From Paragordius varius (lineage: Eukaryota; Animalia; Nematomorpha), in assembly GCA_964247055.1 (NCBI GenBank), contig OZ176052.1, forward strand, positions 9,920,001 to 9,984,000: a DNA stretch of 64,000 nt, written 5' to 3'. Positions 5,501-63,435 of this stretch are shown one piece after another. Under the pieces are notes generated by a model, which made no database searches, was not told the origin of the DNA, and saw nothing but the letters and a program-made list of their open reading frames with translations. The position numbers and the translations under genes were made by a program. Every line of letters starts with the position of its first letter. Positions within the stretch are counted from its first letter, which is position 1.

Positions 5501-8500
5501 ACTATATTACACAAAATGCATAAAATATATTTATCTAAATTTCAAAACATATATACGTTCATCTCTTTTTGTAAATTACCACTTTTTGTGAAAAATATAA
5601 AATTGCGGTCTTATATTTGCAGAATCATTTATATGCATAAATTAACATAAAAAACTTTTTTAGCTGCCATTTGTAGATTGGCATTTGAATATCGTCAATT
5701 GTTGATCGTTTACCTAAATTAAATATTTATATACCGTTTGGTATAAATTTTGGTCAATTTCGCATTTTTTACTATAATTAAATGACTTAAATCATAGTAC
5801 ATGGATTGGGTTAGCCATAAAAAGAGCCGTGTTATGGATTTCTTCCGCAAAAACGATAAAGACAGTGATGGAAAGTTAACGTTGGATGAATTCATAAATG
5901 GTGTTTTAGCCACCAATTTCTCCACTTCGAAACCAGAGTTGGAAAAAGTAGCAAAGGTATATATAATACACTCTAGTTTTTAAAAGTTAATATATTTGAA
6001 TATTTTTATTGCATAACAATTGCTGAATTTTGCAGATAATTGACACAAACTCTGACGGCTACATCGATTACAAAGAGTATATGAAAGCGTTAAGACCTAC
6101 ACAATTAAATCAGGTATGGATGATATATAAAATATTTTTTGATAAATGCACGCACGCTCTTACCTAAATAAATATATTAACCTTTTTTTATGTGATTATT
6201 AAAAAAAATTCCCTTTTATACATGTTGCAAATATTTTTGTTTTGAAATAATCTTTTATTTCGAAATCGGGAAGTTTACCAATTTTCTAAATAAATATAAG
6301 AAGTTTTATAAAAAAAATTTAATAAAATTCATTTAAATCCAAAATATATATGTATTAAAATAATAATTACTGCTGTTTTGACCTTAACTTCTAAATGTTT
6401 TTAAACATATTTTTGTTTTTCGTCCCTGTATATTTTTTAGGCACCCTTGACTGATGTAGAAAAGGTCAAAGATGAGGTACAAAGGCAAGCTAATCTCTGC
6501 GAATGCATTCGTAAATTTAAGGTTGATCATTTAGGTGAAGGAAAATATATGGTAAGTAAAACTAAAAAAATTGGATTAATTTATTAAATATTTTTTTAAA
6601 TTTTAGTTTTGAGAAAAAATGGAAAAATTTCCCTCCCATGCTCAACGTAATCTTGCAAACATTAAAAAATATTAAATATATGGTTGAAAAAAAAATTTAT
6701 TGCGTCATTCATTAAATTGCTGTAAATCTTGTGTTTTTCTAACCTTTTCTTTCACTACGCAATTTTTTAAGTATAGGATTATTACTTTATTGTATTTGTA
6801 TTAATATATCATGGCAAAAAATAAATTGTTGGTTTTTTAATAATTAAAAAAAAATTGTAGTTTGGAGACTCACAAAAATTACGGTTAGTCCGAATTTTGC
6901 GAAGTACAGTTATGGTTCGTGTAGGCGGAGGCTGGGTCGCCCTAGAAGAATTTTTGCTCAAAAATGATCCCTGTCGAGGTATTTTTTGGAATAATAAGTC
7001 ATTTTTTCGAAATCTAGATGCATAAATTTTTATAAAAATAAATTTAAGTAAATGAAGCATTCTACATGCATAATATATCCATTTTTGTTTTGTGCCAAAA
7101 ACATTGGTTTTTTACCGATAATTTTGGCAAAAGAGATAGATTCAAAAGTTCAGATTGTTTAATATCTCAATAATTTTTGAATATGAACATTAGATGTAAT
7201 TAATACTATTTTCTATAAAAAGTAAAATATATTTTGATAAATGATCATGGTAATATATAGCTAAGGGAAGGACCAATATAGAACTCCGTGAACCATTTAT
7301 CCTTGCTTCCGGTGTAAGTCAAACGATGGCGCCTTTCAAAGCTAAATCGCCGCATTCCACACCCGTGAGTCCAGCTTCATTTTTATCTTCCTTGGGTTTC
7401 AATACACCTGGACCGATTACAAAAGTTTGTGTTTTGTTATGTTTTATAAAATGATAATATTTTATAATTATTAAATTATAGAATTTTAGAGGATGTTACT
7501 TGATTCATTACAAAAGAAATTGAGCAAATGTAGTATGGAAGATTATATTCAAAACTTTTTATCATTAGCTCAGATTTTTATGAACAGGAAACGAATTTCT
7601 GTTGCTCTTAGCTGCTTAATAACTCTCCCTCTCATATTACATTTAGTTTTAATATCTTTTTCCTATAAATTATTCATTCTTCTACCATTTGCTCTTTCAG
7701 TAGTTTTTCTTAATGCAATTTACATTGCAAAATGACAAATTCAAAATGCAGATTAATCGTATATCATCTTTAAAAAATTATTTATTCTAGATTCGTGAAA
7801 AAACTCCGCGGTCTACCCCATGGCGCATCAATTCAACCAGAAATAGTGGGCCCACATATCAACAAAGCAATTTTCTAACAGGAAATACTACCCCTTCAAC
7901 AGCGACATCTATATTATCATCACCAAATCCTTCAAATTTATCATCTGTTTTTAGTTCTGTTAGCCACTCTAATAATGGTCTTTTACAAAAAAACGCAAAT
8001 GCTAAAAAGAGTAAGCATTTATCTTTTATATCTTTTTTATTGTCTAATGTATAGTATAAATATGTTAATCTTCATTATTAAATGATAAAAGGCCGCCCTT
8101 TGAATTTCATTCCAATATCCATTAATAGTATTATTGGTGTATTGCACCGGAAATATGTAAAGAGTTTCTTATGAAACATAAGGCGATAATTTCTTTGTAT
8201 ACACCTTGACATAATCTCTAGATTTTTTAAAACCAACATAAAAGGTTTAAACTCAATAATTGTTTATAATAATATTAGCAAAAATTTATACAAAATATTA
8301 TTAAATAATGGCTTTTTGCTAAATATACAGTTTTGTTTAATTATAACATATTTGTACAAATATTTTATGAAATGTTTAAAACCTATTTTAAATATAGGTA
8401 TTGGCAGTAAACCAAGTAGTAGATCGAATTCTCGAGTTTCTTCCAGACTTCCAAGTCGGGCACCTTCTCCATTATCTTACAATCCAGCGACAACTTTTCA

Positions 8501-17389: not shown

Positions 17390-17852
17390 TTAAACATTCG
17401 CAGAAGCTTCTTGAGAACGTAGGCGAGCATGTTCATTTGTAACTTTTATAGCAAGTTGCTGAGCACGTTCAACAATTTGTTTGCGTTTAAGGGCAGAGAC
17501 GGCATGCGCTATTTCAGCACAGTAAGTTTTGTTGTGCATCATAAGCACTTCCAATTCCTGAAATAAAAATTGCAAATTTTACTTTAACATTATTCACTAA
17601 AACTTTTCTGAATCCTGAAGGTAACATATGCTTGGTTCTTTTATGGCTCCCATAACCAACATTTGGCATCAACTTTTGTCCTTTAAAGCGTCTGCGGACA
17701 GGATTATCAATACCTTTTGGTTTTCTCCAATTAGGCTAATATTATATATTTATAAATACTTTCAATCTTTTGTACCGATCACAATGATGACGGGTAAACT
17801 TATTTTTCTTCTTCTTGACAATGTTGTATTTTTTTGACGGATGGAGAGCCAT
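17390..17852 (-). CDS. RPL32: 60S ribosomal protein L32 (eL32), 137 aa
   Basis: Exons 17852-17760, 17735-17583, 17557-17390 give [31 protein letters not shown]|[51 protein letters not shown]|[55 protein letters not shown]. Introns are 24 and 25 nt. Confidence 0.97.
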
Positions 17853-17881
17853 AATTAAATAAGTGAACTCAGCTGTTTTAA

Positions 17882-18384
17882 ATGCCTAAAATACGATTCA
17901 AAAATCCGCCGCCAGAAGGGTGGGATCTGATTGAACCAACGTTGGATGAATTAGAATGTAAAATGCGTGAAGGTACTAATATTTATAAAATTTTAGCGGA
18001 AACTGAATCCCATGAAGGTAAAAGAATAGTGGAATCATTATGGCCCATCTTCAAAATTCACCATCAAAAATCTCGTTATATTTACGACCTTTACTATAAA
18101 CGCAAGGCTATATCTAAAGGTTTTTTATCATTATATATTAAAGAATTGTATGATTTTTGTATTAATGAGAACATTGCAGATAAAAATTTGATTGCAAAAT
18201 GGAAAAAGCCCGGGTACGAAAATTTATGCTGTCTAAGATGCATTCAAACAAGGGACACAATTTATGGAACAAATTGTTTATGCCGAGTTCCCAAAGACAA
18301 ATTAGAATTAGTAATCATATTGTTTATTATTAGGGTAAAATTGTCGAATGCGTTCAATGTGGCTGCCGTGGCTGTTCTGGATAA
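17882..18384 (+). CDS. BUD31: BUD31/G10 splicing factor, 143 aa
   Basis: Exons 17882-17972, 17997-18119, 18144-18310, 18334-18384. Removing 24, 24 and 23 nt GT-AG introns restores the canonical MREAETE, KAISKELY and [20 protein letters not shown]-stop. Contains [14 protein letters not shown]. Confidence 0.97.
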
Positions 18385-19932
18385 TATGATTTTATTTATG
18401 TAAATAAATTTTAATAATTTAACTTTCTTATTCTCTTATAATAAAATCTATTATTTTAACATGCAAAAATCAAATATTTTATTTTAAACTATAAGTAAAA
18501 TTAATAACCATAGCTCGCGATGGCTTTTCATCCATTGTTTTCTTATTATTTAAATGTAATAATTGATGGTATAGGGTAAATGTATTCAAAATGTGGTTTA
18601 GTTGGGACCATTCATATATAATTATATGTATTTAAAACAGTAGTTTTTTTAAAAAAATATTTGTTCAAGTGAATATCATAAATTATATACATGACACATG
18701 AACACTTGAAGAAAAGCTTATAATAATTTTAAATTCTCTTTAAATAGCGATTAACATTTAATTCTGGCTGAATAATAATATATTTTTGACGATATATTTG
18801 ATTTTTATGCCTTTATATAAATTTTTGTTTAAAAGTTGTTTTTTGATAGTCACAACCGGGGGCATCAACCCTAGTTTGCATGAGTTTATTAACAATGCAT
18901 TATGTTAACCCATTTGTGAATGCATGATCTTAGATGTGGAGTTAACTTTTAATTTTTTGGTTTTTCATTAGCTTTGTATCAAGGGTTCGTTTTACAAAAA
19001 ATCTAAATGTCATAAATGATTGTAACTTGTATTGCAATTATTTTTAATATAACGGAATATATGGATCATTATCCGCATCATGATTTTTTCAAAAAAAACC
19101 TTAAAATAATTTTAATTTATTAAATATATAATTAGTAATATTCTAGAAAAATCAATAAAGATTATCTAAATCTATTTTTGTTTAATATTTTGTTCATTTT
19201 GAGAATCGCCTACAACCCACAAATCAATAATTTTATGATGAGGTATTCTCAACTTTAAACAATCATAATTTAATAATTAGAGCTTTATTTGAAAATCGGT
19301 AAGGGCATGATGGCAAGCATAAGCCAATATTTCATAGCCGACGTTTAGTGAAAGCTTATCATGAGGTAAATCCCATGTAGGCCATATCGCGTTTTACCTG
19401 TATCTAGGAAGGGCTTGGGTTAAAATGCATATATTGATAACTGACCTGCGTTTATGTCATTTTTTAAAACATAATACTTTCCGAAATATATAATAATTTA
19501 AATGTAATATGTAAAATTTTTTATCATTTTCTTCTTATTATTATAAACAAACTTAATTAGTAAATTTTGCTTTTTTATAGGCATGCCCCTTTTCGAATTA
19601 GAGCTTAAAAAAATATTTTTTGCAAAATCTAACCTGTGAATTAATTTGTGGGAATTATTTTTTTAACAAATTATTACAAATAAGTATAATAACATATCTT
19701 ATAAGTAAGTAGGAAAAAATAAGTATAATCTGTCGTATATGAATCTAAACGAAATTAAATAGTATATAGCGATTCTAATGGTCAAATAAAAACATCTTCA
19801 TTTATTTAAAATTCGTCCATATAAAAACAATGTATAATAATAATTAATATATGTGATATTAAAATCCAATTTGTTAAAATAGAATGTTGTTGTAATCCAT
19901 ATAGTTTCTCAAATAGAATAGGTTTCATTGGT

Positions 19933-22900: not shown

Positions 22901-23671
22901 CAGTTAAAGATTTGGTGTTATCAGTTTTATTAACATTTTCATTTGGCAATAAGACAGGAGATCCTGAGAGACCATATTGATGATTTATAGTCTGATCTTT
23001 ACTGGTTGTGTCCCTATTCAACTGGCCATGTGGCTTTGAAGAAAAATTATTTGGCACATAATTCTTGTATTTATCTCGGTTATAATTGGGATCGTATGGA
23101 TGACGATACGGTATATTCTTAGTTTCATTGTTAAAAGAAGGTTTTCGTCTGGGCTTATTTAAATTATCCACAAATTTAATTTTGTTTTTATGATGTAGAG
23201 ATGAAATTGCGTGCTGATGTCTCTCATATGCAGAACTATTTTCATCCAATAATTCTTTATCCAAAAAATCAGATGGTCCAAATACATTATCAGCATTGTA
23301 ATCGTAATTTTCTGATATATTCCGTCGCCGGGCATTATTTTGATGATGATAATATGGTTTAGATTCTGATTGATACTTGGGAGATGTCAAAACATTGTCA
23401 TAAAAATGCGCATTAGACAAATCTTTATTAATATCGTCTACGTTTGCCCAATGATTATTGTCAGTATGATATTTCGGATGGGATTGTGAAAAGGGGTGAA
23501 CCTATTAATTAATATATTCATAACTTTGTGTGGATAGTAAGGAGATCTTGGAGCACCCTTTCGTATTAACGCCGGTATTTTGTTAACGATAGGGTTTTGC
23601 TGTGCAAAGGATATTTTATCAATGTGAAATAATTGTTGCTTTGTATAAAAATACTGGTTATTAGGCTTCAT
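19933..23671 (-). CDS. Uncharacterised ~600-aa protein, candidate divergent GIGYF (PERQ)-like translational repressor
   Basis: Exon 23671-23525, a 23-nt intron at 23502-23524, then the long open exon 23501-22077 (well supported). Lower-confidence phase-0 exons 21867-21790, 20440-20327 and 19974-19933 (stop). N-terminal YFYTKQQLF, a GYF-like segment PQFTLLELVYLLFNGAINVDCPLISLDG, and a KKKKKNK tract. Family assignment is inference. Confidence 0.6.
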
Positions 23672-43200: not shown

Positions 43201-45408
43201 GACACATATCCAAATGATATAATAAACCATACGCGTGCTAGGAAACAATTCTGAGACAACCTTTTGTTAAATTAAGGATTTGAATAACAAATAGTAAATT
43301 ATAGACGTACATTCCTCAAAAGAGTTTAGAAATTTCACCTTATATGGACTTTTTTGCACAAAAAGACAGACTTTATTATTGAGGGAGGAATACTCTTTCT
43401 CTGATGAAATAATCATAAGTAATCAAATTTCGATCATAGACATTAATAATTTGATTTTACCCTAATCTCGATCAACAAAGTGCAAAAGACCGGTTATGCA
43501 TCTCGATGTTAAAAATTCCTCTTCAATAGGTATTTTTACTAAACTATCATAAAATAATATTAATGCTGTATAAATATCTGTGGTTTTCTATAAAATAAAT
43601 AGACCCCATAGAGGTACATAATAAACAAAAAACAAATGGGTTCTCATTCTAGATTTTTTATTTATATCGTCAGTGATGCTCAAACCGCGGGAAACAGGCC
43701 ACATTCGGCCCTAAATATATTATAGCGCTAAATTATATATTAATTTTTTTGATTACTTATTTGGAGTATAAATTTGCATATTTGTCTAGCTATGTAATCA
43801 TTTATCGGTATTATATGGTACACGGCCTAAAATAACTATATTTGCTCTGTAAAATTTATTGGTGAGTACCTCGAATGTGTACCATTCACTCAAATTCACC
43901 CTTGAACAATTCAATTTCACCATAAAAATAAATCATGTGTTTTTGGGCTATTATAACTCATTATTAATATGAAATGTATCTTTATAGCATACTTTATTAT
44001 TTTTTCAGTAATATTTTAATTTAAACAAAATTTTATTTTTAAAAATATTAAAAAAATAGATAATTTTTAATCTGAAAAAACACATAATTTTATGGTAAAT
44101 ATGAATTGTATGAGGGTGAATTTGAATTATTCAAGGTGAATTTGAAGTATATATTAACAGCATATACAGAATATAATATAATGATTATCAATCCATTCGA
44201 GTAATGTAGGTTTATAATGGGATTTCTTTGAAAACATAACTATGTTCCAGCATCTTAGGCTTAACTTTTACAATATAGTCATTACTGTGCAATTGGTTGG
44301 GGAAGCGATGGAAACTTTAATGGCTATATTATAATGTGGCCAGATAGGCTGTTTTTCGCAGTACAGTACTGGGTTTTCAGAAAAAAATGCGCCTGTTCTG
44401 AGCCTTTTTATATTGCTTTTCAAAATAAAAAAATTAATTAATAAATATATATTAATTACCATTTATATATTCAAAAAATTATTTTTGAATTCGATATAGT
44501 ACCCTCTGTAAAAATAACCCCGTAATTTATAAAGAAATGGTTCATTTTGCGGTATAAGATTGGCCTATATTTAATTGGTTAATATTTTATTTTCTGCTCA
44601 AATTATACATAAAACTTAGGATTGCAGCCTTTCGAGTGGAGAAACTAGAAATTCGGACTCCACACCGTAAGATTAAGGCTAATGGCTCTTTCACTCAGGG
44701 CTTCCGAAAAAAGAGGTGTCTCAAAATTTAAAAAAAATAATTTTTGATATTTAAATAAATGTTTGATCAAGTTTAGAAAGTTCATTTTTTGTTATAATTA
44801 TCAAACAGAAAATTATATAGAAAATCGTTATTTCATTAACTATAATTTAATATGTATTATATATGGCATATGATTTCGAAATAATTTTTTTTTTCGTAGA
44901 AATTAAGAATTTTTACGTTTTCTATACTCATTAGGTGGGAGGTATGATATTACTTAATTTTTTATAATTTCTTATTTTTTTGCATAAAAAAATTTGATAT
45001 TTTGTTGAAGCGTACTTCTAACGATTTCGAAGCATGATGGAAACGGTATAACGCTTTAAGATATTATAAAACCTTATTTCAAAATAATTCGATGGTGTTG
45101 AACATTCAGAATATAATTTAAAGGTTTGTTTGCTTGCAAATTTTGGTGAATTTTCGTAAAAAACACAATTTTTATTTAACATAAATTTGAAAAAGAACGA
45201 TAATTTAATCAAAGTTCTGAAATATATGACATCTTATTAATGGTAGCGTTTAATTTTTTTTCTGATTTATTGATATCTAGAAGAAAAATTAATTTAAATT
45301 TGTGGTTATTTCAAACAACTATGATTTTAATATTGTTTAGTCAATTTTATATTTTTATGAATAAACGCAAATGATATGTCATTAATCAATTAGTCATAAC
45401 ATACGCAA

Positions 45409-48400
45409 TCTATAAATTTATAAAAATGGAAAATTCTGGCTTTGTGATCTGTTTCCAGAAAACCGGTAGACCCATTTAAATCCAAATGTCGAAAAAATAT
45501 AATCATTCATGAATCCGACAATAGCTTCGCCCTTTTTTAAATTAGGCCCCAGGTTCGGGCCCAACCCATGTAAAAAACGGTTTTTTTTTGAAAACAGAAG
45601 TCCACAAAAATCGTGTCTTTGAGACAATTTTCCGGAGAACGTGTTGGACCATTCAATTTCAAATATGATTTTATTTTCCATTGCGCCGAACATAGTCGTC
45701 TCGCTTTTTTAATTTAGGCACTCTCTTTACCCGCTCCCCTCGTAAAATGCCATTTTTTCAAAAAAATTAAGTCCACAAAAATAATTTTTTGAATCTATTT
45801 TTGGTCCAAGGTATGAGACCGTAAAAATTCATTAAGGATTCCAAATATTCCCTATTAAAAGGCAAAAATTTAAGTCAAGCGTTTCTTTGATGATAGCTGC
45901 TGAGTAAGGAGCTACCCGCGAAAAACTGACCCGTCATATCGAAATAGCGTGCTTTTGGGGCTAAATTCAGAAAACCTATCAGGCCATAAGAATTCAATAG
46001 CTGCTTAAAGTATTACCCTAAAAAGTCAAAAATTTTAGTCGATTTTTAAATTAAATAGGCCCTTTACGTCCTAAAAAATGCGCTATCATTGAACTATTAT
46101 TTAGTTTTGAAGCCATTCATCCATAAACAATAGTAAAGGCAAATTTTTATATCTAACTACATTTAATTGGCCTCTGGGTAGGAGGTTACCGGAGTAGAGC
46201 CTGCGCCATCATATCGATACAGCATGACTTTGGAGCCAAATTTCAGAAAACCTATGAGACTATGTGAATTATTTCAACATTGTGCCGCATAATAAAATTG
46301 CTTATAAAATCAAAAATATATTATGCTCATCTATATATTTATAAAAATGGAAAATGCTGGCTTTGTGATCTGGTACAGGAAAACCGGTAGACCCAATCAA
46401 ATCCAAATATCGAAAAAATATAATCATTAATAAATGTCCCGACAATAGCTTCGCCCTTTTTTTGAAATAGGCCCCCAGTTCGGGCCCACCCCGTATGAAA
46501 AACGGGTTTTTTTTGAAAACAGAAGTCCACAAAATCGTGTTTTTGAGACAATTTTCCGGAGAACGTGTTGGACCATTCAATTTCAAATATGATTTTTGTT
46601 TACTTATTTTCGATTGCGCCGAACATAGTCGAGCCACTTTTTTGATTTAGGCCCTCTTTTTACCCGCTCCCCCCGTAAAATGCCATTTTTTTCAAAAAAC
46701 AAAGTCCACAAAAATAATTTTTTAAATCGATTTTTCGTCCACGGTATGAGACCTTAAAAATTCTATAAAGATTCCACGTATTCCCTGTTAAAAGGCAAAA
46801 ATTTTAGTCCACCGTTTATTTGTTGATAGCTGCTGGGTAAGGAGCTACCCGCTAAAAACTGATTTTTCATATAACTTTGGGAACTGTTTCCGGAAAACCG
46901 GTGATCCCAATCAAATCCAAATATCGAAAAAATATAATCATTAATGAATGGCCCGACAATAGCTTCGCCCTTTTTTGGAATTAGGTCCCCAGTTCGGGCC
47001 CACCCCGTGTGAAAAATGGGTTAAGTCAATTTTTTGGAGAACGTGTTGGAGCATTCAATTTCAAACATGAATTTTGTTTACTTATTTTTGATCGCGCTGA
47101 ACATAGTCGAGTCACTTTTTTGATTTAGGCCCTCTTTTTACCCGCTCCCCCCGTAAAATGCCATTTTTTTTTTGATTGTATTTTTTTGTCCACGGTATGA
47201 GACTGTAAAAATTCGAGAAAGATTTTTCGTATTGCCTGTAAAAGGCAAAAATTTTAGTCAAGCGTTTTTTTGATGATAGCTGCTGAGTAAGGAGTATCTA
47301 TCATATGTATAGCATGTTAAAAGATATATGGATATTAAAACATTATTTATGGTAATCTATATATTTATAAAAATGGAAAATGCTGGCTTTGTGTTCTACA
47401 GGAAAAACGGTAGACCCATTCAAATCCAAACTTCGAACCCCCCCCCCAGACGTCCGAAGGACTTTCTCGGGCTGCGTAGCAGCACGAGATTCACGCTAGT
47501 TTCAAATAAAATTGTCTGTCTCAATATTCAAACGAGACAATCATCACAAATAACATTGTAATATCCTGCTTTTTCAATCTCAAATCTTGTTTTAAGTTAT
47601 AGACAGTTATAATCAGATTGATATCATATAAAAGAGTTAGAATAGCAATAGCGAAATAAGAAAAAGTTTCATAATTTAAAAATTATACGCCTTTAACCGA
47701 GATTTTCTAAGGATTTTTTTTGCAATGAATCAGACTTTAATGATTTTAAATATAAAATCGTATTAGTTTATTGTTTTATTATTTTTTATTTATCTATCAT
47801 ATGTATAGGATATCAAAAAATATATGGATAATAAAAAAACATTATTTATGGTCATCTATATATTTATAATTGAAAGTGGTGGCTTTGTGATCAGTTTCCG
47901 GAAAACCGGTAGATCCATTCAAATGCAACTGTCAAAAAAATATAATCATTAATGAATGCCCCGACAATAGCTTCGCCCTTTTTTAAATTAGGCCTGCAGT
48001 TCGGGCCCACCGCATGTAAAAAGCGGGTTTTTTGAAAACATGTCCACAAAAATCGTGTCTTTGAGGCAATTTTCCCAAAAACGAGTTGCATTCGATTTTA
48101 AACAGGATTTTTTTTACTTATTTTCGATTGCGCCGAACATAGTCGGCTCGCTTTTTTAATTTAGGCCCTCTTTTTACCCGCTCCCCCCATAAAATGCCAT
48201 TTTTTTAAAAAAAAAATTACGTCCACAAAAATAATTTTTAAATCTATTTTTCGCCCAAGGTATGAGACCGTAAAAATTCAATAAGGATTCCAGGTAATCC
48301 CTGTTAAAAGGCAAACTTTAGTCGTGCATTTCTTTTATAATGGCTGCCGGGTAAGGAGCTACCCGCTAAAAATTGATCCGTCATATCTGTGCCTTTGGGG

Positions 48401-49660
48401 CTAAATTTCAAAAAACCTATCAAACCATTTGAGTTCAATCCGTGCTTAAAATATTACCCGTAAAAAGTCCAAAATTTAAGTCGAGCGGATTTTTTAAATT
48501 AGCGGTTAATTAGGCCTTTTACGCCCTGAAACATGGGCCACCATAGAATGATTTTTTAATTTTGAGCAATTTTTTTCAGAAACTAATGAGAGCATATGGA
48601 ATCAATCATGATTCCAGGTATTCTCCGTAAAAAGGCAAAAATTTTAATCAAGTTTTTTTGTATCAGACTCTGGGTAGGAAGCCACCAGCCTAGAACTGCG
48701 CCATATCAAAATTGCGTTGTTTAGGAGTTAATTTTCCGAAAACTTATCAAACCATATAAGTTTTATAAGAGCCTGAAATATTACCCCGTAAAAAGGCAAA
48801 AATTTTAGTCGAGCGGTTTTTTATATTAGAGGTTAAATAGCCTCTTAGTAGGGGGCTACCCGCCGAAAAATGCGTCACTATATTAATACAGCATGCCTTT
48901 AGACCCAAATTTCAAAAAACTTATGAGACTATGTGAGTTCAATAAGGCTTAAAATATTTATTACCCCTTAAAAAACAAAATGTTTTAGTATAGGGTGTTA
49001 TTTCAATGAGTCGCTAAGAAAAGTTTTGCGCCCTGAAAAATTCGCCGTCATAGAAAAATTTTTTAGTGTTGAAGCAATATTTCAAGAACTTTAGGAATAA
49101 TGGAATTATAATTCCAGATATTCCCCATATAAAGACAAAAATTTTGCCCAACGCTTTTTTATACCTGCCTCTGGGTAAGAAGCTACCCGCCAAAAACTCC
49201 ACTATATAAAAATTGCGTTGTTTTGGAACTAATTTAAAGAAAACTTATGGTATATGAGCTCATTTAAAGTTTGAAATATTACCCATAACTAGGTAAAAAT
49301 TAAGGTCAGGACTTTTTTTATTAGACGTTAATTTGGGGCCTTTATGCCCTAAAAATACGCCATCATATAACGATTATTTAGTGTTGAGGTATTTTTTCGA
49401 AAAACCCATTAGACGATAGTCTCAAAGATGATTCCAAATATTTTCCCTATAAAGGCAAAAAATTTAACTTAGCGCTTTTACTATATAGGCCTATGGGTAG
49501 GAGTCTACCGGTTTAAAACTGAGACGCCATACAAAAATAGCGTGGCTTTGGAGCTAATTTTCAAAAGACTTAAGAAGCCATACGAGTTCAATAAAGGCTT
49601 TAAATATTATCCAAAAAAAGGAAAAATTATAGCATAGCGGTTTTTTCCGTTAGCCGTAAT
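45409..49660 (+). mobile_element. Tandem array of Helitron-derived units grading into a ~163-bp satellite
   Basis: Helitron-like 5' ends A|TCTATATATTTATAA at 45409 (variant), 46330, 47356 and 47855. Long shared internal blocks (ccgacaatagcttcgccc, cagttcgggccca, tacccgctcccc, gtaaggagctacccgc). About 9 diverged ~155-180 bp repeats at ~48250-49660. Confidence 0.75.
47356..47499 (+). mobile_element. Complete 144-bp mini-Helitron
   Basis: Starts TC after an A (47355) and ends CTAG before a T (47500). GC-rich hairpin ctcgggctgc-gta-gcagcacgag at 47466-47488, 7 nt before the CTAG. Confidence 0.8.
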
Positions 49661-50587
49661 CGCCTAAACACGGGACGTGTTCAATAATATTTTGACTTTT
49701 TAACACTATTTCGTTAGCACGTGTTATAAATTAACATTGTATGTAAATATTGGTTAGAATAAATCTGCGCCTTTATCTCATAAGGTAGAATGAAATTTAT
49801 TTTATATAATCTTTATATAAAAGAAGTTAGCTAAATTAAATATGAGAGGTAGTAGATAATACAAAGTAATGTATGGATAATAAAAAATAATCAATGTATA
49901 TATAGAAGGGGATTAATTGATTGTGTCACTGGTGTTACATTCATCATTAGTTATATGCAGTATTCATATATAAATATACAATATATATTAATAAAGCACA
50001 TTTTTACTTATATTAAAGCTAAAGCTAACTATCATCTCCAATTATAAATGAGTATTAATTACACTTTTTTACCTTTCGACTTTTTAATCAGATTATTACA
50101 TTTTGGTTTCAAGAACAATATTTAAATTTTTGGTAAAGCTTATAATAATCTGTCGTATATTTTTGGTATTTTCTTTTGTTTTTATATAAATCATAAATAT
50201 GCTACCTGAGTACATTGATTAACAAATGCAAAATCATATAAAAATATGCATATCCCCAATATAAAAAAGTAATTATCCATATACTAATTAATAAAATTAA
50301 AATACTTGAACTAATAGCGTTGTGTTGCATAGATAAATTTCATATTTATATTCCCTGAATCATATATAATAATTGCATTATAAATTGATGTGCATGATTG
50401 GTTAATAATATTATTATTAAATCCCTAAAAAGATACCCGTATGTTTGAACAATTTATGTTAAATTTATGTTTATAATAAACAAATTTTTATATGTCTAGA
50501 CTGCTAGAATCCAATAAAAATGATATATAGATATGTAGTGAATTTCTATATAAAGTCGCATGTATCATCATTACCATCTTGGATATG

Positions 50588-51122: not shown

Positions 51123-54100
51123 TGTGTGCAATTATTTTAACAATATATTTTTTTTCATGATATAGCTTATGACCAGCGTATTTATTTGCCATTAAAGTTT
51201 TTATTTGTTTACGACCTATTTTTTAAATATTGAAGGAAAATCAAAAGCGGGCAAAAATGAAAATTAAGGATAATTCAAAAAATAAAAATAAAATTTGAAT
51301 ATTATGGTTTATTATCATTTAATGAGATATTCCAATATATAAATAGACTAAAATCCTATAGTTGGGGTTTCTATAAAATCTCAGCTCAAAAGATGGCGTT
51401 CTTTTAACACACAAATTTTTCTATAAAACTGGATTAAAATATTTTTTTTTTAATTATCTAGCTAATTTAACATTCAAATTTTATTCAGTAAAAATACGTA
51501 TAAAAAAACTAAAAATATTGTTTTTTATTTTTTCATTTTTTTTTCATCTGGTTTTGAATGTAAAAAAATTTATAATGATTTATTTTGGAATCTCAAAATG
51601 AACAGGGAGTTATAAAGTATATAATTTGTGCAAAATAGGATTTAAAAGTAGTAGAATATCAACCAAAAATCCTTACGAATCCCTGTAACAAGTCTGTTTA
51701 AGACAAATTAATATTTTTATTAGGATTCGTACGGATTTTTGGTTGATTTTCTACTAATTTTAAATTTTATTTTGAATGAAATATATACTTTATAATTCCC
51801 ACTCATGTAAGATTCCAAAATAAAACACTATGAAATTTTTATTAACTTATAAACCAGATGACAAAAAAATGAAAAAATAAAAAATAATATTTTTTGGTTT
51901 TATTTTGATATATAAGTTTTTTTTACTGAATAAAATATGAATATTAAGATTTTAATAGTGAGTTTAGCTAGCAAATAATTAAAAAAAATATTTTAATGTA
52001 GTTTCATAAAAAATTTTTGTCTTTTAAGTGTGAAAGAAAAACGCCATCTTTACCTGATATTTTATAGAAACTCAAAATATATGATCAAAATGATAATAAA
52101 CCATATATCCTTAATTATCCTTAATTTAGTTTTTAGCCGATTTCGATTTTCTCACAATATTTCAAAAACTAAGTTGTCAACAAATAAAAAATTTTGCGGC
52201 AAATGAATTCGCTGATCGTAAGCAATTTCATGAAATAAAAATTTTTTTGTTAAAAAAATTAACCCTCTTTTTTGCACACCGTATATATATAAGGGGTGAC
52301 CAAACGGTCGACCGCGGTCGACTTCGTGATCTCGAGATTTTAAAACGTAACCGCCTGAAATTTTTTTAAAAAAAATGTAAAATATATTTTTGTATATTTT
52401 GTAAAATTATAATTTATTCTTTGTGTTTAAAAAATTCACTTGTTAAAATATATTAAACTTATTTAATATTAATAATATTTATTTAATCATAAGTATTTTA
52501 ATTGAACTTTAAATTATTCGTAATTTCCTTATAAATTTTGATTTAGCAAAAAAACACCCTTTATATTTTAATATAATTAAAGCCCGGAACAGGGTTGGTA
52601 TTTGGAAGTTTAATTGGAGGCCTGGTTCTTTGAAATTCAAAAATGAAACGGGGGTAAAATTTTGAGACCGGAACAGGGGTTTCCTTAAAGAAGTTACGGT
52701 TTCCGAAACCGAGTCATTTGGAATCGGTTCCATTTTGCTTCCCGACTCTTCATCAAATGATTATTCAGAAAGTTTATTTCATTAATATCGAAATAAGTTC
52801 TTTATCAGTAGATCAAAAAATCTGCCTAAAAAATATGACTGTGGTCGTCTTCAAGTGTTAAAAGGAGATCAGAAAATGTCAGCATGGTAATTCCGTTTTA
52901 TTTGGATGCGAGAAAAATGTCATATGATCAATCATTTAAAAAAAATTCAACAACAAATTTTAGTCTTGTGATGGGAAAGCCGAAAAAATGTTATTATTCA
53001 ATCATATTTAAATAATAATAATATAAACATTTTGGCGGTAGAACCGGAACCGGGCTGTTCCCGCAACAATGAAATAGGGCCCTGCTATGTGTTTTCGGTT
53101 CCGGTTCGTAAGCCAGGTCAATGGATAAGCAGTTCAACTGTTATACATATTAATTAGTTTTACCCATTTTTCCGAATCGAAACGAGGAAAAATGGAAGAA
53201 ATTTTTATAATTTTTTTGATATAATTTATACATATTAAAACTATTTTTTATAACAAAATAATTTAATTTTAAACACAATTTTTATGATTTAGCTAATAAC
53301 CTATTGTAATAGTATAAAACAAGTTACTTTTAGCTCCTAGGACAATACAAGCAGTAAATAAAGCGTATTCCGAAAATGTTAGTCTTAACTCCATAAGCTC
53401 TGAAACCACTTCCGATATATCATCAATAAATTGAGCTTCTTCATTTTTAATACTGATATGTTTGAAAGATTTAAACGGAAGCCAATGATAACTCGAGTTA
53501 GGGATATTAGAATTATGGATTTGAGAATTTACTTTGAAAGTCAATGGATACAATACATGGCATTCCGTGCTATCAGAACTAAAAGTAAAACGATTCGGTA
53601 ATTAAAAAACCCTGTTAAAAGTTATGAGTGATAAAATATCGATTGTGTAACGCTATCAAAAACACGGTCTCTGTCTAATAAGATATTTATAATACCCTAC
53701 TAAATAGTAATTAAGTTTAACTCATAACATTATTTATTCCATTAAATTTGAATAGATTTTGTAAAAATTACAAATCAAATGAAAAATAACTTAATTTACT
53801 TTAATGTCCAAAATTATTGTCGTGAATATTTTTATTTTGAAAAAAATTAATTTAATATTCACACCACCTTAGAAAATTTAATCTAACTTATATTTGTCCA
53901 TTATCAGTCTAAATATTATTAATTTATATTACTTTTTTAATGATTCTTGATGTTCGAATTCGGTTGCGGTTGTATCAGCCGTCGGCTCTCTCTTCATATG
54001 TAATGCCAGCCAAACTAATACCATCTCGAAATTGCTAGATTTTAACAGAACAATTTGATCATCTTGGGGTAGTATCATGAACCCTGGCACCATTTTAACA

Positions 54101-57100
54101 AATTCTATAATGTTTTGAATGAGCATAGTCAATTTATCTGCACAATCTACCCATCGTTCTTCGTATGACATATTTAACCATTTTAACATTACTGTCTGGG
54201 GGACTCTATTTGTAATGGTTTCTTCATTACAATTTGAGTCACTGTATCTGTCATCTAAATTTGGCGCGTGATTTCGACTATTATCACCATTATTGTTTTT
54301 GTTTGAATCTACCCGTATAATTATACGAGAATATGCAGCACTGAGCGTTTCAATCAATAATTCATCTACAAAACAATTAAAAGAAATAATTAACCATTGA
54401 AATTATTTTTATTTGAACTTGATTTTTTTTGAATATTTATCACGTATATATTAATGTTTGTCCGGAATAGAATCGGAATTTTTTGGGAGCTACATACGCT
54501 CTAGTCATTAATATAATAAATTTAATAAAGTATTTAACTCTAAATTTACGCAAAACTAAATTCAATGTTGAAAACAAGGATACCAGGCTTATTATTGTGT
54601 TTTTAGTATTGGATTTGTAATTCTTTCAAAAAAAATTTATATTATCACTAAAAATTTAAGCGAATTTCAGGCACAAGCTCTGAACAAAAAATAAAATGCT
54701 TTTAATCAAATCATAATTTTATGTAAATTATATTAAAATTTTGTTGGAACAATTGGGATAAAAATTGCTTAAAATCTGCATGTGTTTAATAGCAAAAAGC
54801 CGTTAATGATTTTAATATTAAACAAAATAATTAAATTTATTTAAAATGTTCCATCTATTACATTTTTATAATTAGCACCTGTTTAGGTATTTTGCACCTA
54901 ATTATATAACAAGTTTTACTATTTTAACACTACATGCTCCATTTTATAAAATCACATCTTCATTATTCGTTAAAGACATCTTTTTGATAATTTGGTTCAT
55001 TCATATCTTCAGCGGCAACATATAGGTGGAAACATGATCATCACGCATAACAAAAAATAAAAGTTTGTCATATAAAATTTAACCAAAACCTCTCTACCTT
55101 AGATTTATGCGTCTATATTTAATAAACAATTTACTAAACTTTAGTGAATATTAAAAATGTTTGTTAAACAATCGCGGCTTTTTTGCGATTTATGAGCACG
55201 CACAAGAGAGACTTAATTAAAAATGCGGTACCAAATGCATAAATCAACGATGACACTCTTTTTTCTGCCATCACCAAAAACCAACATATAAAAAATGCCT
55301 ATTTATCGCCCCCTATTATGGCAAGCGGGACATGTTCCCCTCACTACGTCATTGTGCAACGATAGACTTTATACAAGATGTGTCAAAGGTACACAAAGCA
55401 TTTGATAACATATTTGTTTGATTAAATTTTATAAACATATTAATAAAATCAAAAAGTTTGATTTTAGGCTTTTAATCTTTGTAAAAGATTAATTATGAAA
55501 GTAAAATTTCATTTAATTACATATGGAAAAGATAAAACGATTTAGATATCATCATGTCCAAATCTTAGGTTATCCTAAAGGATGAACAATGTTTGTTACC
55601 TATAGGTAAAAGTGGAGATGGATTTGTAAAAAGGTTTAAATAGGTTGGCATATGATTTGAAAATGGCAGAAGCCTTATCTCTTCCTTATCATCATGAAAA
55701 ACAGAGGTTGTACTATCAGGTTGATATTCACCATTAGAACTGCTAATTGATACGTTACGATCTAGAAAATCAAAACAAGTACCAATTTAAATAATTCTGT
55801 TTGTTTAAATTATAAAAATTTGGTTATTCAATTAGAAAGTTTTGTTATATTGTGGAAACAAAAATATATATTACCTTTTATGCGAGATTCGCAATTCTTA
55901 TATAAAGGTAGAACGGTTTGGTTTGGAGAATCGGGTAATAAACCATGGCAACTGAGCCCACTTGTGCGCCTTGGAAACTCATCTTCGTGAGAGAGTGAGA
56001 TACCACTATCACCTATAGGACCTATGACCAAATCATTGTTTATTGTACCGTTCACCGAATGTTGGTGATTACCGTTAAAATCAGAAACGGAGATTTCACT
56101 TCCTTCGTTAGATAGGGATTGAGTTGTATCTCGGTATGAATTTTTGTTTTTCACGTCGTCATTTATGGGTTGTTGAGAAGTTTTGGCTGAAGGTAAGGAC
56201 AAATGTCGATTAGGTGATTTCCCATCTCCCAAAGAACCGTCTGCCGATGATGACCCACATGATGAAAATTGTTGATGCCTTCCAGAATATTGTAATTCAC
56301 TTTGCTGTATGTCTGGCGTTGGAATTAATGAAGAGGTTCCACTTACCTGTTCTTTTTCATCATATAAATGGCCATTTTTCATTTCGAAAGCATTTCCCCC
56401 ATTACGTAAAGGGTAATATTTTGGAGCGTTATTATGTCCTTGCATAGATTGGTGTGGATATAAAAATTCATGATCTTCACCGTTTATGTTTTTGGATAAC
56501 TGATTATTGGTACTTTGCAAATATTGATCCAATATTTCGTATTGTTCCCTGCGATAACATGATTTAAAAATTATTACATTGGTAAAAGTATTTTTTTAGC
56601 CCAGAAAATTTCTATTTTAAAGGGGTTATTTAAAACATACTTTTTTATTAAGACTTCGATATGAGTAAATAATATAGAAGTTCAATAAATTAAATAAATC
56701 GTTCGAGATCTTTTATTGGCGAGATGTAATTGATTAAAAATGACCAAATTAAATTTAATTTTTTCAAAAAGATCATATCATGCCATTGAGCTTCACCAAA
56801 AATAACCAATCTGACTCACGCTGCAGTATTTTACAACCAAAAGCAAATGCATATGTACTGTATGTATGAATAAGGTTATTATATACACAGGGCACAAAAT
56901 GGGTATTATAAAAACATCCTTATAATATATATTCTAGATAAATGTATCAGGATTATTATGGTGCTTGTGGTTTTGGGCCCTACGAGTGATTTAATAAGTT
57001 CATTTCGACTTTTATGGTAAGTACTCTATATCGATCGCAAAATTTGCGCACACCACCTAAATAAAATCGTTTGGCAAAAGCTAAATGTCTCATTCCAAAA

Positions 57101-60100
57101 ATAACATTAAAATGTATCTATCATATTAAAAAAGTAAAAATATTTTTTTACAAAATTTAATTAGATATGGGCTCTGATACCCATCAAAAATGGGCAAGTT
57201 TTCCAAAATAAGAGTTTTTAATATATGATTGGGTCATCAAAAAAATTATTTTACAATGCATAATTAGTTTAAAATTTATATTTATGCAAATTTTGTTGGA
57301 GCATACATCACACTGTTTTGAGGCATGGTGGAAACGGTCGGTATAAAAAAATTATAAGATATGATAAAAACATTTTTTCTATATAATTCGAGGATCCTGA
57401 ACTCTTCGCGTCAAAATTTTGTTTAAAATATTCCCACGCCTTTAAATTTATGTTGATTTCAAATTGTCTTTTTAAGAAAATTCACCAAAATTTAAGAAAA
57501 CGCAGATTTAACACAGAGGCGTAGCTTGCCTTTCTGGCGCACTATACATGAATCTGTGATAGCGCCCCTCCCCATCCATGCAACCCCTCTCTTATTTAAA
57601 AATAATCAAATTCACTAAATGGGTGATTTTCTATGTTTTTTTATAAAATATGAACTTTAATACCTATTTTTCTGATATAAAATTAATTTTTTTATAAAAT
57701 CCGGTGCCCGGTGAGCCAGTCCCCCTCCCACTAACTACGCCAATGATTTCGCATAAAATTCAAGGGTGATAAAAATCGGCATAGAATTTTAGTAAACTGT
57801 TTTTGTACATTAAGGCGTTTGCCGTTTCCATCATGCTTCAAAATATTACAAGGTAGGCTTCAACGAGCTGTTAAGCAAAACCATTTTTTGAAGTCAAAAA
57901 GCATATATTAAATTTTTTTATTGCGCAATCTCGGCATGTTTGTCTTTTTTTAAGATTTGTCATTTTAGTAAGAAAAAAATTGGAACTTTGCGAGTCCACA
58001 TCTAAAAATTAAAATTTTATAAAATATTATTTTGTTTTTTCAGGGCTTCGAACCCGTTTAAAAAAAGTGGAACCCGAACCGAACTGGTTGATGAACAGTT
58101 AGAATCGGAACCAGTCTTCTTTCTAAGAATTTCAAAATGAAACCAGAGTGATTTTTGAAATTTATGAACCGCTACCGGGGTGGCTCCTAAGAAGATGAAA
58201 GCAGCCTATGTATATAATTTTAATATAATAATATGGTTTTACTTTTTAAATATATTTTATAATATATTTTAAGGATGGCTTTTGGTATGAAGCATTTGGC
58301 TTTCATTAAAATTTTTTTTATTTTTAGATATGGACAAGCTACCAAGGTACGAATACCTTTTTTATATCATTCGGGTACATACAAAAGCATCATCATAATC
58401 CTAATATATTTTCCATGAGAAATATAATTCATCAGGATTTTATTATATTCCTAGATTTTGTGCGCTTTGTAATCAAATCCAAAAATGATATTAAACACAC
58501 ATTCAAATTGCAAATCGAATATTTATTATAGAAAAAAAATATTGTCTAATAGTCTATCTGCTTCAATAGAAATTTGCTTTTATAGAATTTGACTCTTTCA
58601 ATTAATGTTTATTATAATAATCCAAGGTCGCTCGATGGTTTAAGCCAAGGGTGTTCAACACGCGGCGCTCCAACATATTTTAGCCGCGAGAAATTTAAAA
58701 AAAAACGATTAAGTAAAATTGAATTTCTTTTACAAATTTTCAGAATAATTCTTTCTAATTCTGGCAATTAAATATCAAATGTTAAAATAAATAGTAGTTT
58801 TTACAGTCTTATGTTTGAAATTTAATAAAATGCCCCAATATTTTGCCAATGTTGGATTTTTAGATTCTAAATTGTTGCCTGCAAAGCCATCTATGCTCAC
58901 CCGTGGTTTACACATATGGATTGCATATGTTGCATTAATCAAACAGTATTTTTTGAGGTTCAATTAACAAGTAAGGGCTTTATTTTATATTTTTCACATC
59001 GAGTCTACTGTTTGATCGGTGCATCTACAACTTTGAACTGCACCGAAATAAACCACGGATGAAATTAACACCTCTCTTCCTCACATAATAGCCCTAATCG
59101 TTAATAATGAATTATTTAAATTTGTTAAAATAAAAGCCTACTCTAATAGTAATCAGGTTTAAAACTGTTTCTAATGTCAAATCAAATAATTATTTCTATA
59201 ATCCGATTAAAGTCGATATATAAATAAATTTGAATATAAATACCCATTATTATAATCTTTTCCATTCGCATTATGCAGATGGGAACCGTTGTGTTTTGAT
59301 GTTGTGCCATTGTTCTTTAAAGTATTTTCTGGCTTTGATCTATGAGAATCTGAATTAGTAGTTGTGCCATTATCTTTCTTATTGCCATTGATATAGGGTG
59401 GCGTAAAGGCGTTTTCTTTTGCATGATAATCGGCAAAATACGAATTTCCATTCTCCATATTATTGTTGTTATTCGCATTAACATTATTTTGGTGTTGCAG
59501 GAAATTTGTTCCGTTTTGTTTAGGGGGCGGCACACTATTGGTAGTATTTAGATTAGTAGGGGTCATATTACCTACACCGAGATAATTTGTAAAACCGGCA
59601 AGTTGCATGAGTGGATTTCCACTCCCGCCAGGGAAATGTGTTGATGTTGGATCATCGTGGCTACTATGAAAGCCATTTAAATAGGATGCATCACTTAAAC
59701 CCCTTGAAAGCACGGGTGGTGTGCTATTATTATGCAGCAAATTACCATAACCGTTTCCTATAAAAAAAATTATTGGAGTTATTATTTGTTTATATTTAAT
59801 TTACAATAAAAATTGAAATCATAGAGACAAAACGTAAAAACTTAACCTTTTTTTCATATATAAAATCAAATTACAATTAAATATCCAATTTATAGTGTTT
59901 CCAATTTACATCTCTATTTCATACTTTGTAATTTGAAACAATGCGTTATATTCAAAAAAGTATAAAAAAGTAGAGCGTTTTGAAAAAAATTGCCTTTATG
60001 TTTTTACGTTTTGTCTCTATAATTTTAAATTTTTACGGTAATTCTTTTATTAGTGTAATTATTGGCGATTCTCTTGACAAATCTCGCAAATATTTACATA

Positions 60101-61838
60101 ATTCTTCTAACCAAAAAATTGGAATCACCCAATTTTCACATATTAACATCTTATGCATATGATATAACTCGAACGTTTACCAATTTCAAATTTTAAAACA
60201 TTTTTACTTCAAATAAAACAATTTATAGTATATGTGAATACCATTGTAAAAATTATTTGATAGGGGGTGATTCATGGGTAGAGAATGACGATGTCCCAAA
60301 TGGTTACCATTTTGATGGTTATGAGATGAGGCCAGCCCATTGCCATTGATGGCGTGTAAAGAGGAACCATGATGTCCATATGCGTGATAATTGTTTGAGG
60401 ATGCGGAACCAAATTGTTGTTGAATTTGTTTGATTTTTTCTTGATGATAACGTGCCTCATCTTCTACCACTTCACGTTGTTTTTTAGACATGCGACCAAA
60501 TTTTACGGCTTTTTTATAAGAATTTATATAGGTTATAATTCACTAAATTATGGTAAAAGAAAACGGTTATAACATGCTATAAAATCAACTATCTTATAGT
60601 ATAAATATAACAACAGTTTTTAGGGTAAAAATATCTTCATTATCCTTATGTAATACTGTGTTTTGGCTATGCAGCGAGGTAAGAGATATACATATTTTTT
60701 CTTCATTATTCTGTGGTTTATTTTTTTTAATAGTTTTGTTGATAGCCAATATAAATTCAGCCATTAGAAAAGCAACATATGTACCTAAAATATATGCTTT
60801 ACAACCAATTTGTTGGCTGCAATTTCGGAGATATAACCCCTGATAAGCTTCTTTGAAAAACAGAGTCTATAAACTAATTGGATCATGCTGATCATCATGC
60901 ACTTAAGCAATTTTTAAACAAGGGCTTAATTTTTGAGTTATAATCGTTTGAGATTCAGAATTTTTTTCATAAACGTAGATTATAATTAATTATAATGTAT
61001 TATCAAGTAAAATTTAAAATTAATGAAATTTTAATTAAAATAATTAAATTTAAAAATTCTGTAAAAAGAGATCGGTATGCGGATAAATGACTTATGATTT
61101 TTTCCAAAATCGTGTTCAAGATGGGGGTTCACTGTAAATGTATGACACATATATGCTTTTGAATTTTACATAAAAATTTATATAGTTATTGTGGAGAATG
61201 TTTTACCATCACGAGACATTCCCAGTGCGATGCATTTTTGTAGCCTGCAATATTGACATCGATTTCGATTAACGCGGTCTATCATACAAGTCTTTTGTCT
61301 TGGACATTGATAACTCACAACACTAGATTGACTCCGTCTGAAAAAACCCTGTATAGCGCATAACAAATTTTAATATACATTATTCAAATGCGTAAATTTC
61401 ACCGACCTAATATTATGGTACTATTGTTTATACACAGAATTTTTAAATTTATACATTTTACTGAATCCAATTTTCTAATAATATAATTGTTTAATATATT
61501 ATATGGTTGTTTTTTTATTAAAATGTGCATACACTTGAACATTAAGGTAGTTATGCGTTAGCAATTTAAATTCAACAATTCTAAGAGCCATATTAAAGCC
61601 GGCAAAAAGTTTAAATGCCATTCATTAACTTTAGAAAGCTCGATTTGGCTTGAGCTTTATCAATGAAGTTTGTCGCTCTTTATCATAATATTAACCATGT
61701 ATTAATTTTGACATATATTTATTAATTAAAAATAAATATTTTGCAATGTTACCTTACACCCCTCACAGGTTATGACTCCGTAATGGACCCCAGAAGATTT
61801 GTCACCACACACTTTGCATGGTATTATCTCAATTTGAG
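50588..61838 (-). CDS. HR3: Nuclear hormone receptor HR3/NHR-23/ROR (NR1F); first (A/B) exon not found in the window
   Basis: Frame-consistent exons 61838-61753, 61348-61207, 60508-60242, 59757-59244, 56548-55875, 55761-55600, 54365-53933, (53908-53888), 53578-53328, 50841-50588; ~934 aa. [32 protein letters not shown]|[19 protein letters not shown]...GMSRD|[46 protein letters not shown]-2 LPALHKELF. Confidence 0.95.
51079..51121. repeat. (TA)n microsatellite; others at ~26899-26923, 27174-27196, 30953-30982 and 63438-63470
   Basis: Directly visible dinucleotide runs; two of them flank the palindromic elements. Confidence 0.9.
51120..52283. mobile_element. Second copy of the palindromic Tc1-like element, in the last HR3 intron
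   Basis: Begins tactgtgtgca directly after a long (TA)n and ends aaccctcttttttgcacaccgta before (TA)n. Internal arms are homologous to 27195-28400. Confidence 0.8.
57514..57745. mobile_element. ~230-bp hAT-like MITE in an HR3 intron
   Basis: Imperfect TIRs cagaggcgtag / ctacgccaatg. Flanking 8-mers atttaaca and atttcgca match at 6 of 8 positions, consistent with an aged 8-bp TSD. Confidence 0.55.
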
Positions 61839-63435
61839 CTAAAAATATATAAATGTATCAGCACAATATCTTTTGTAGTAATTAAAATATACGATTTCCT
61901 TAACATAATATGTATGATTTCCAAAGGATATAACTACAGTTTTAGTAATTCTAAAGCAGGTTTATATTTTGTTAATTTAAAATTATCTGCATATTAATGT
62001 ATGACCTGGCAATAAATTCGTGTTACGTGAATCAAGTTAGGGATTAGGTAAAAATTTGATCTGTTTGTTTAAAAGAGCTGTAACGGTTGTTGTGCCATTT
62101 TTAATCTTAAAATAAAATTTGTTTAACGAATATTTAACTGGAATCTGAACACGGGAAAATGGAACCATTTGAAATGTTTCAGGGACAGTTACAACCGAAA
62201 CAAACAGGGGTTCAAAATTAAAATGCCGTGGTGGTGCGCAAGAAAATTGAAACAGATCAGGGATAGTCTCTAAAGGATTTAAGTAGTTTTGAATATTTCT
62301 ACAAAGAATCTCCTATAACTATCTATGACGTAAAGTGTCTTTTTCAATTTAATAATAAACCGTAATGTGATTATTCGCGAAACAACAGATATTTTAACCA
62401 ATTTTATTTTTAAAAGGTATAAAAGCCCAATGAATTATGATCATAATTTTGAACACATTTTAATACAACTTTAATTATGGAAACCACCTGTTTGGATGGA
62501 ACCGGGGTTGCTCCTCAAGGGTTGGAGCTGAGGTGAAAAAATGGAAAAAATTTGGTTGAAAGCCCTGATTTATTATAAGTTATGATCTGCCGAAAATTAT
62601 CTTGAAAACATCGGTAAAACATATTTATGACTTTAATACAAATCATACACATCATGCCTTTCAATACAAATTTGCATGACTACCCCAGACTCATTTAAAA
62701 TTGCAGATATTCGAATGAGATGGAGACTATGCGGAAAAATCAATTAAACGTAAATTAGTTAAATTAAAATCTAATTATTGCATTTCGATCGGATAAATTT
62801 CGCTTAATTTATCAGGTACCTCTTGTTTACGATGAATATTATAGTACGAATTCTAATTTATTTTTTCTTTTTTGACCCCTATTCTGTGTCCAAATTAACT
62901 TTAGCGCATTTAAGTCTAATATTTGTTCAATGCTGATGGTGTATTGCAAAACTATACACTTAAACTAAATGGGAAAGAAAATTTCTATTTTAAAAATTTT
63001 TAAATCTGTTCTTTGCCTGCTTCAATGACAATCCTGCTATAATAATATATATAACGACACAACACGTCTTTATTATGTTTTATTTTTTTTCAAATAAATT
63101 TAATTTATTAAATAAAATAATAATACATTGTATGATTAAAATTTTTAGTGGTAGTAATAATAAAAACATAAAATAGGACAATAAAAATGCGTGTTATCCA
63201 TGTAAAGAAAATCAAATAGCTTAAAGGTCACATATTACCTATAAAAAATAACAAAATAATATAATAATATTACCTTTATGTTTATCAAGGTAGTTTAATC
63301 ATCGAAGTAAATTTTTTGCAAAAACCGAAAAATTATATTACATATATTATTGTTTATGGAATTTAAATTTAACCTTTACTAATTGTTCACCAATAAAACA
63401 ATGCACAAAATCGGGGAGTATAATAAATATGCTGA

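Follow-up and report, generated by a model that had tools for sequence, protein, structure and literature searches.

Five 23-25 nt GT-AG segments at ancestral intron positions in the head-to-head RPL32 and BUD31 genes of a probable nematomorph

Gene layout and spliced products

We analyzed a 64-kb stretch of DNA, referred to here as the window. Two conserved animal genes lie head to head within positions 17390-18384 of this window, with RPL32 on the minus strand and BUD31 on the plus strand. Direct reading of the sequence places only a 29-bp spacer (17853-17881) between the divergent start codons, so the promoters and 5' untranslated regions of the two genes must overlap or be extremely short. 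Both coding sequences are interrupted by very short segments that start with GT and end with AG. TAA terminates both genes, indicating that the standard genetic code is used.

RPL32 consists of three exons and two putative introns, all on the minus strand. Exon 1 (17760-17852) begins with an ATG at 17852-17850 and contains 31 codons, as assigned by translation and gapless alignment to eL32 chains. The first putative intron (17736-17759) is 24 nt long, reads GTATTT...ATTAG, and lies in phase 0 after codon 31. Translation and eL32 alignment identify 51 codons in exon 2 (17583-17735), which is followed by a 25-nt segment (17558-17582, GTAAAA...TTCAG) in phase 0 after codon 82. Exon 3 (17390-17557) was assigned by eL32 alignment and ends with the stop codon at 17390-17392.

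Four exons of BUD31 were identified on the plus strand by translation and alignment. Exon 1 (17882-17972) holds 30 codons plus 1 nt. It is followed by a 24-nt segment (17973-17996, GTACTA...TTTAG) in phase 1 after the residues KMRE (residue 30). The second putative intron (18120-18143, GTTTTT...TAAAG) is also 24 nt long and lies between exon 2 (17997-18119) and exon 3 (18144-18310), in phase 1 after AISK (residue 71). The third (18311-18333, GTAATC...ATTAG) is 23 nt long and lies in phase 0 after KLEL (residue 127). Exon 4 (18334-18384) ends with the stop codon at 18382-18384.

Splicing out the five segments produces a 137-aa eL32 and a 143-aa BUD31, each with an intact frame and with start and stop codons. 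Both products align end to end and without internal gaps to solved human or vertebrate chains (E 6e-58 for eL32 and 1.7e-79 for BUD31), and the BUD31 product is ~77% identical to the human protein. The original prediction held that five GT-AG segments, nearly pure in A and T, must be removed from RPL32 and BUD31 to obtain canonical proteins. The coordinates, the lengths (24, 25, 24, 24, and 23 nt), and the terminal dinucleotides are all as it described; the interiors of the segments are 93% A+T compared with 63% in the exons; and the gapless alignments to human eL32 and BUD31 bear out the need for removal.

The consequences of reading through a segment differ among the five. The 23-nt segment in BUD31 and the 25-nt segment in RPL32 shift the reading frame, and the 24-nt segment in RPL32 contains an in-frame TAA. 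The 24-nt segments in BUD31 (17973-17996 and 18120-18143) are multiples of three and stop-free, and each would add 8 extra residues if retained. An mRNA that kept either of them would therefore escape nonsense-mediated decay, and partial retention of these two segments may occur. This departs from the pattern selected in Paramecium.

Intron positions and lineage of the locus

We compared the positions of the five segments with the introns of orthologous genes, using exon structures that were solved exactly from the genomic loci. All three BUD31 segments match introns in the mollusc Biomphalaria (4362, 2595, and 89 nt), the nematode Trichuris (48, 54, and 58 nt), and the fish Cyclopterus (785, 336, and 160 nt) in both position and phase. 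The beetle Tenebrio has introns 1 and 3 at the same sites and phases (51 and 53 nt) and has lost intron 2. Both RPL32 segments match introns in the brachiopod Lingula (507 and 170 nt), the mayfly Neocloeon (59 and 141 nt), and the nematomorph Gordionus (44 and 41 nt), again in position and phase, and the first is shared with the shark Chiloscyllium, where it is 740 nt long. The segments in the window are the shortest at every site: 23-25 nt, where Gordionus has 41-44 nt and the other comparators range from 48 to 4362 nt. It had been proposed that the introns occupy ancestral positions in both genes and that they are old introns compacted to a narrow, tiny size. The match of position and phase at all five sites confirms the first proposal, and together with the lengths in Gordionus and the other animals it supports the second.

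The closest relative of the RPL32 product among 5.8 billion proteins is that of the horsehair worm Gordionus montsenyensis, with 80-81% identity; all other matches are at most 76% identical. In a maximum-likelihood tree of RPL32, a tree of one gene with one nematomorph reference, the window protein groups with that of Gordionus at 100/99 support. This grouping agrees with the ecdysozoan setting that had been assumed for the tiny introns. Base composition is also similar, with a GC content of 26.9% in the Gordionus genome and ~27% in the window (24-34% in 2-kb steps). No protein in the collection, and hence no transcriptome product of the same species, is more than 81% identical to the window products, a statement that for BUD31 covers the best 120 of 529 matches. 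We conclude that the RPL32/BUD31 locus most likely comes from a nematomorph or a very close relative, other than G. montsenyensis.

The arrangement of the two genes was also examined in Gordionus. BUD31 is not adjacent to RPL32 in the stretch of the Gordionus RPL32 locus that we inspected, and the stretch of the neighboring gene that we examined is mostly one long intron. No nematomorph BUD31 is present among the best 120 of the 529 protein matches, yet the equivalent search with RPL32 ranked the Gordionus protein first. It may be that the BUD31 gene model of Gordionus is absent or broken.

We considered the possibility that the two in-frame BUD31 segments stay in the mRNA, constantly or frequently, and are translated into 8-residue insertions, with only the other three segments being spliced. 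Their lengths, multiples of three, and their lack of stop codons fit this explanation. Both segments nevertheless have GT...AG ends that coincide with ancestral phase 1 introns, and their A+T content, above 85% in each, sets them apart from the exons and places them with the other tiny introns. The correctly spliced orthologues in our alignment, which range from fungi-like sequences to human, have no insertion at either site (0 of 10). Three further rows of the alignment do contain an insertion at the first site; these are products of Logan contigs from other animals in which an intron has been kept at exactly that position. Constitutive or frequent translation of the two segments is thus highly unlikely.

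Natural variants and alternatives to splicing

The locus was recovered in DNA contigs from four sets, representing three samples and two studies. These contigs are colinear through the exons, the introns, and the spacer at flat, full depth. No excised form or joint was found at any of the five segments in the four contig sets. A single 759-nt contig (17374-18132) covers both RPL32 introns, the spacer, and BUD31 intron 1. A second, intronless copy of nearly the same sequence would break such a contig, and its continuity speaks against one. These results demonstrate that the five segments are real DNA.

The contigs also revealed natural variation across ~1.1 kb, with 28 single-base variants among the three samples. 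Every exonic variant is synonymous in the spliced reading frames (17 of 17), an outcome expected with a chance of ~0.2 per site and thus with P about 1e-12. These include three variants in RPL32 exon 2, three in RPL32 exon 3, six in BUD31 exon 3, and two in BUD31 exon 4, the last two being synonymous only after removal of the 23-nt intron. Five variants fall within two of the introns (two substitutions in RPL32 intron 2 and three in BUD31 intron 3), and intron length is unchanged in every haplotype. The only indel among the contig variants lies in a 3' untranslated region. These results demonstrate that the spliced frames of RPL32 and BUD31 are under selection.

In the interval 18220-18442, one sample contains two haplotypes with 15 differences over 223 positions (~6.7%). 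Such divergence reflects either very high natural diversity, mixed samples, or cryptic species.

The variants bear on the idea that the window holds silent, decaying copies of RPL32 and BUD31 with small insertions, while the working genes lie elsewhere in the genome. No RNA run on record matches the locus, as would be expected of silent copies. Decaying copies are difficult to reconcile, however, with exonic variants that are without exception synonymous in the spliced frames, with two intact frames that retain start and stop codons, or with GT-AG ends located exactly at five ancestral intron positions. The contigs that run unbroken over the exon-intron borders also oppose a near-identical intronless copy. 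The colinearity of the contigs and the restriction of exonic variants to synonymous changes argue strongly against both pseudogenes and assembly error, and we regard silent copies as extremely unlikely.

The shortest internal eliminated sequences (IESs) of Paramecium are similar in size to the 23-25 nt segments, and DNA elimination occurs in some nematodes; even so, the likelihood of excision from the DNA, or of an assembly artefact, in place of RNA splicing is close to negligible, given the full depth of the segments in four DNA contig sets from three samples with no excised form, their GT...AG rather than TA...TA ends, and their location at sites where other animals have spliceosomal introns.

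Taken together, the evidence indicates that the five segments are very probably genuine U2-type GT-AG spliceosomal introns of bilaterian-ancestral origin, shrunk to 23-25 nt in a nematomorph or a very close relative. From the genomic sequence we infer that they are removed from the mRNA.

Splice signals and other introns in the window

We searched the rest of the window for additional introns. A sixth tiny GT-AG segment of 23 nt (23502-23524, minus strand, GTTATG...AATAG) links a 48-codon exon starting with ATG to an open frame of 492 codons in an orphan gene. No homologue of this gene was found, so the segment is a candidate intron only. A 27-nt GT-AG candidate in the ligand-binding domain (LBD) region of a nuclear receptor gene was rejected because it leads directly into a stop codon. 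The window contains 482 open segments of at least 40 codons, most of them non-coding, and two scans that bridged open reading frames, one of which included control dinucleotide pairs, gave no intron-length signal above noise in the window.

Introns of ordinary size are present in neighboring genes. A MACF1/shot-like EF-hand-GAR gene on the plus strand has introns of 79 nt (5957-6035), 327 nt (6114-6440), and 309 nt (6552-6860), with GTAAGT-like donors and T-rich YAG acceptors, and its spliced product aligns without gaps to the MACF1 chains 5x57 and 5ve9. The nuclear receptor gene (53296-61857, minus strand) has introns of 404 nt (61349-61752, between two zinc-finger zf-C4 exons) and ~350 nt; its LBD exons lie 8 kb from the zf-C4 exons, and the gene spans ~8 kb. 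It appears to span kilobase-scale introns, in contrast to the genes with tiny introns. Tiny introns and ordinary introns of 79-404 nt thus coexist in the window, with the tiny ones clustered within genes. The canonical introns of ordinary size in neighboring genes indicate that the tiny introns form a second size class and are not the product of whole-genome compaction.

Repetitive features are also present in the window. A large, near-perfect palindrome occupies positions 1-2180, with arms at 1-804 and 1387-2180 that are 98-99% complementary in three blocks and are separated by a spacer of ~580 nt; the left arm may extend beyond the window. A tandem or dispersed repeat family is located at 45400-49700, where GC content is above that of the surroundings, and an open-frame fragment recurs in it ('...WARTGGLF.KKGEAIVG.FINDYIFS.FGF.W.YRFSG').

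We compared the splice signals of the five introns and the sixth candidate. Their lengths are 23, 23, 24, 24, 24, and 25 nt (n=6), all below 30 nt and with a narrow spread, and all have GT...AG ends (5/5 introns and the candidate). In this small sample, donors begin with GTA in four cases and GTT in two, positions +4 to +6 are not conserved, and AG is the only conserved part of the acceptor. None of the donors of the five introns (GTACTA, GTTTTT, GTAATC, GTATTT, and GTAAAA) matches the U12-type 5' consensus (A/G)TATCCTT. An A is found at -8 in four of the six sequences and at -7 in two, which at n=6 is inseparable from the 40% A background. A T at -6 is present in all six, and this too is inseparable from base composition at n=6. 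Two motifs that we examined by eye, T-R-A-Y at -9 to -6 and YTAA with the A at -8, were rejected; each fits only one of the six. No snRNA genes were identified within the 64-kb window using Rfam.

These introns are most economically explained by a model of intron definition and conventional U2-type splicing, the branch point lying only a few bases before the AG. In this model, a conventional spliceosome would remove the segments from the pre-mRNA using a 5' site cut down to GT(A/T) and a 3' site cut down to AG. The branch adenosine would lie ~7-9 nt upstream of the AG, inside a T/A-rich stretch that would double as a substitute for the pyrimidine tract. The narrow length range may correspond to the minimum spacing that the catalytic core needs between the 5' site, the branch point, and the 3' site. 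The same splicing model has been proposed for myxobolids and Dicyema, with conserved U2 snRNA and U2AF (PMC13644364). A modified spliceosome, which the original prediction raised alongside length-based intron definition, is not called for by these data and is not required, because U2 snRNA and U2AF are conventional in these two published animal cases and in Stentor (PMC13644364).

Comparison with known ultra-short introns and implications

We compared the locus with other systems that have ultra-short introns. Among the 51 animal genomes surveyed in a paper of September 2026, introns below 30 bp occur only in myxobolid myxozoans and Dicyema (PMC13644364). Intron length in Henneguya salminicola has a median of 27 bp, and the value is 22 bp in Thelohanellus kitauei and Myxobolus rasmusseni (PMC13644364). 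In myxobolids and Dicyema the short introns occupy conserved positions, and their 5' and 3' splice sites are cut down to 'GTa' and 'AG', respectively (PMC13644364). The original prediction cited ciliates and dicyemids as precedents. Both are valid, but the list was incomplete, as it omitted the myxobolids (PMC13644364). The window shares the features of this animal class: lengths below 30 nt, a narrow length range, and motifs reduced to GTa...AG (n=6).

The myxobolid introns resemble those described here in several respects. Both are animal GT-AG introns that measure less than 30 bp and occupy conserved sites in housekeeping genes, among them genes for ribosomal proteins. Both are A/T-rich, with GTa/AG-reduced sites and weak A residues upstream of the AG, and in both cases the short introns tend to fall together in the same genes and coexist with longer ones. 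Myxobolids, however, are cnidarian parasites with fast-evolving, gene-poor genomes, whereas the locus described here belongs to an ecdysozoan with well-conserved proteins. Splicing in myxobolids is also backed by Iso-Seq, while the introns reported here are known from DNA.

Dicyema japonicum is likewise an animal with introns below 30 bp at conserved positions and with reduced splice motifs (PMC13644364, citing Lu et al. 2019 and Zverkov et al. 2019). Dicyemids differ from the organism studied here in being spiralian-affiliated parasites, and the window contains introns of 79-404 nt and large intergenic spaces. Dicyemids have a compact genome in which nearly every intron is tiny.

Outside animals, tiny introns are removed by a conventional spliceosome in Paramecium (~25 nt) and Stentor (15-16 nt) (PMC13644364, PMC5014332). 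Ciliates and nucleomorphs resemble the locus in having GT-AG introns with narrow lengths near the physical minimum; unlike the locus, which uses the standard code and belongs to an animal, they are unicellular systems in which essentially all introns are tiny. Chlorarachniophyte nucleomorph introns are 18-21 nt long.

The nearest comparison is with RPL32 from G. montsenyensis, which encodes a protein 80% identical to ours in an AT-rich genome (26.9% GC) and has introns at the same two positions and phases. Its introns are 44 and 41 nt long where those in the window are 24 and 25 nt, and the extreme shortening is not shared, at least at these sites.

We found no report of tiny introns in Nematomorpha in the literature searched, which did not extend to the genome paper of Cunha et al. 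(2023, Current Biology) or to the species list of the 51-genome survey. The nematomorph genome papers within that literature make no mention of intron size. The introns described here are of a kind already known from dicyemids and myxobolids; if they are indeed unreported, they represent a third animal lineage, and one with a non-compact genome.

This comparison raises the possibility that spliceosomal introns below 30 nt arose independently a third time among animals, in Nematomorpha or one of its branches, which would be their first occurrence in Ecdysozoa. We put this forward tentatively, with a confidence slightly short of even. If it is true, a large genome with sparse genes holds a tiny intron class of ~23-25 nt beside canonical introns, which are 79-404 nt long in the window, so that one nucleus would handle two very different intron geometries. 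The shrinkage would also postdate the split from the lineage of Gordionus, whose RPL32 introns are 41-44 nt long. The difference between 24-25 nt and 41-44 nt at the same RPL32 sites offers a comparison for studying the minimal spliceable intron and the geometry of the branch point.

A further corollary concerns gene annotation. Gene finders and BUSCO rarely model introns this short, and many nematomorph gene models may have been broken as a result. The 'rampant loss of universal metazoan genes' reported for Nematomorpha, along with later absence calls, could then be in part an annotation artefact. Nematomorpha show a BUSCO deficit and a reported absence of PIWI, GTSF-1, and RdRP (PMC13650160). 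Because standard annotation and mapping settings reject introns of this length, claims of gene loss in nematomorphs, including these, may need to be re-checked.

A third origin would also differ from the first two in its host. The two known hosts are tiny parasites with reduced genomes, whereas the host here would be a large-bodied ecdysozoan that keeps long introns and wide intergenic regions. If true, a third origin of this kind would decouple intron miniaturisation from genome compaction.
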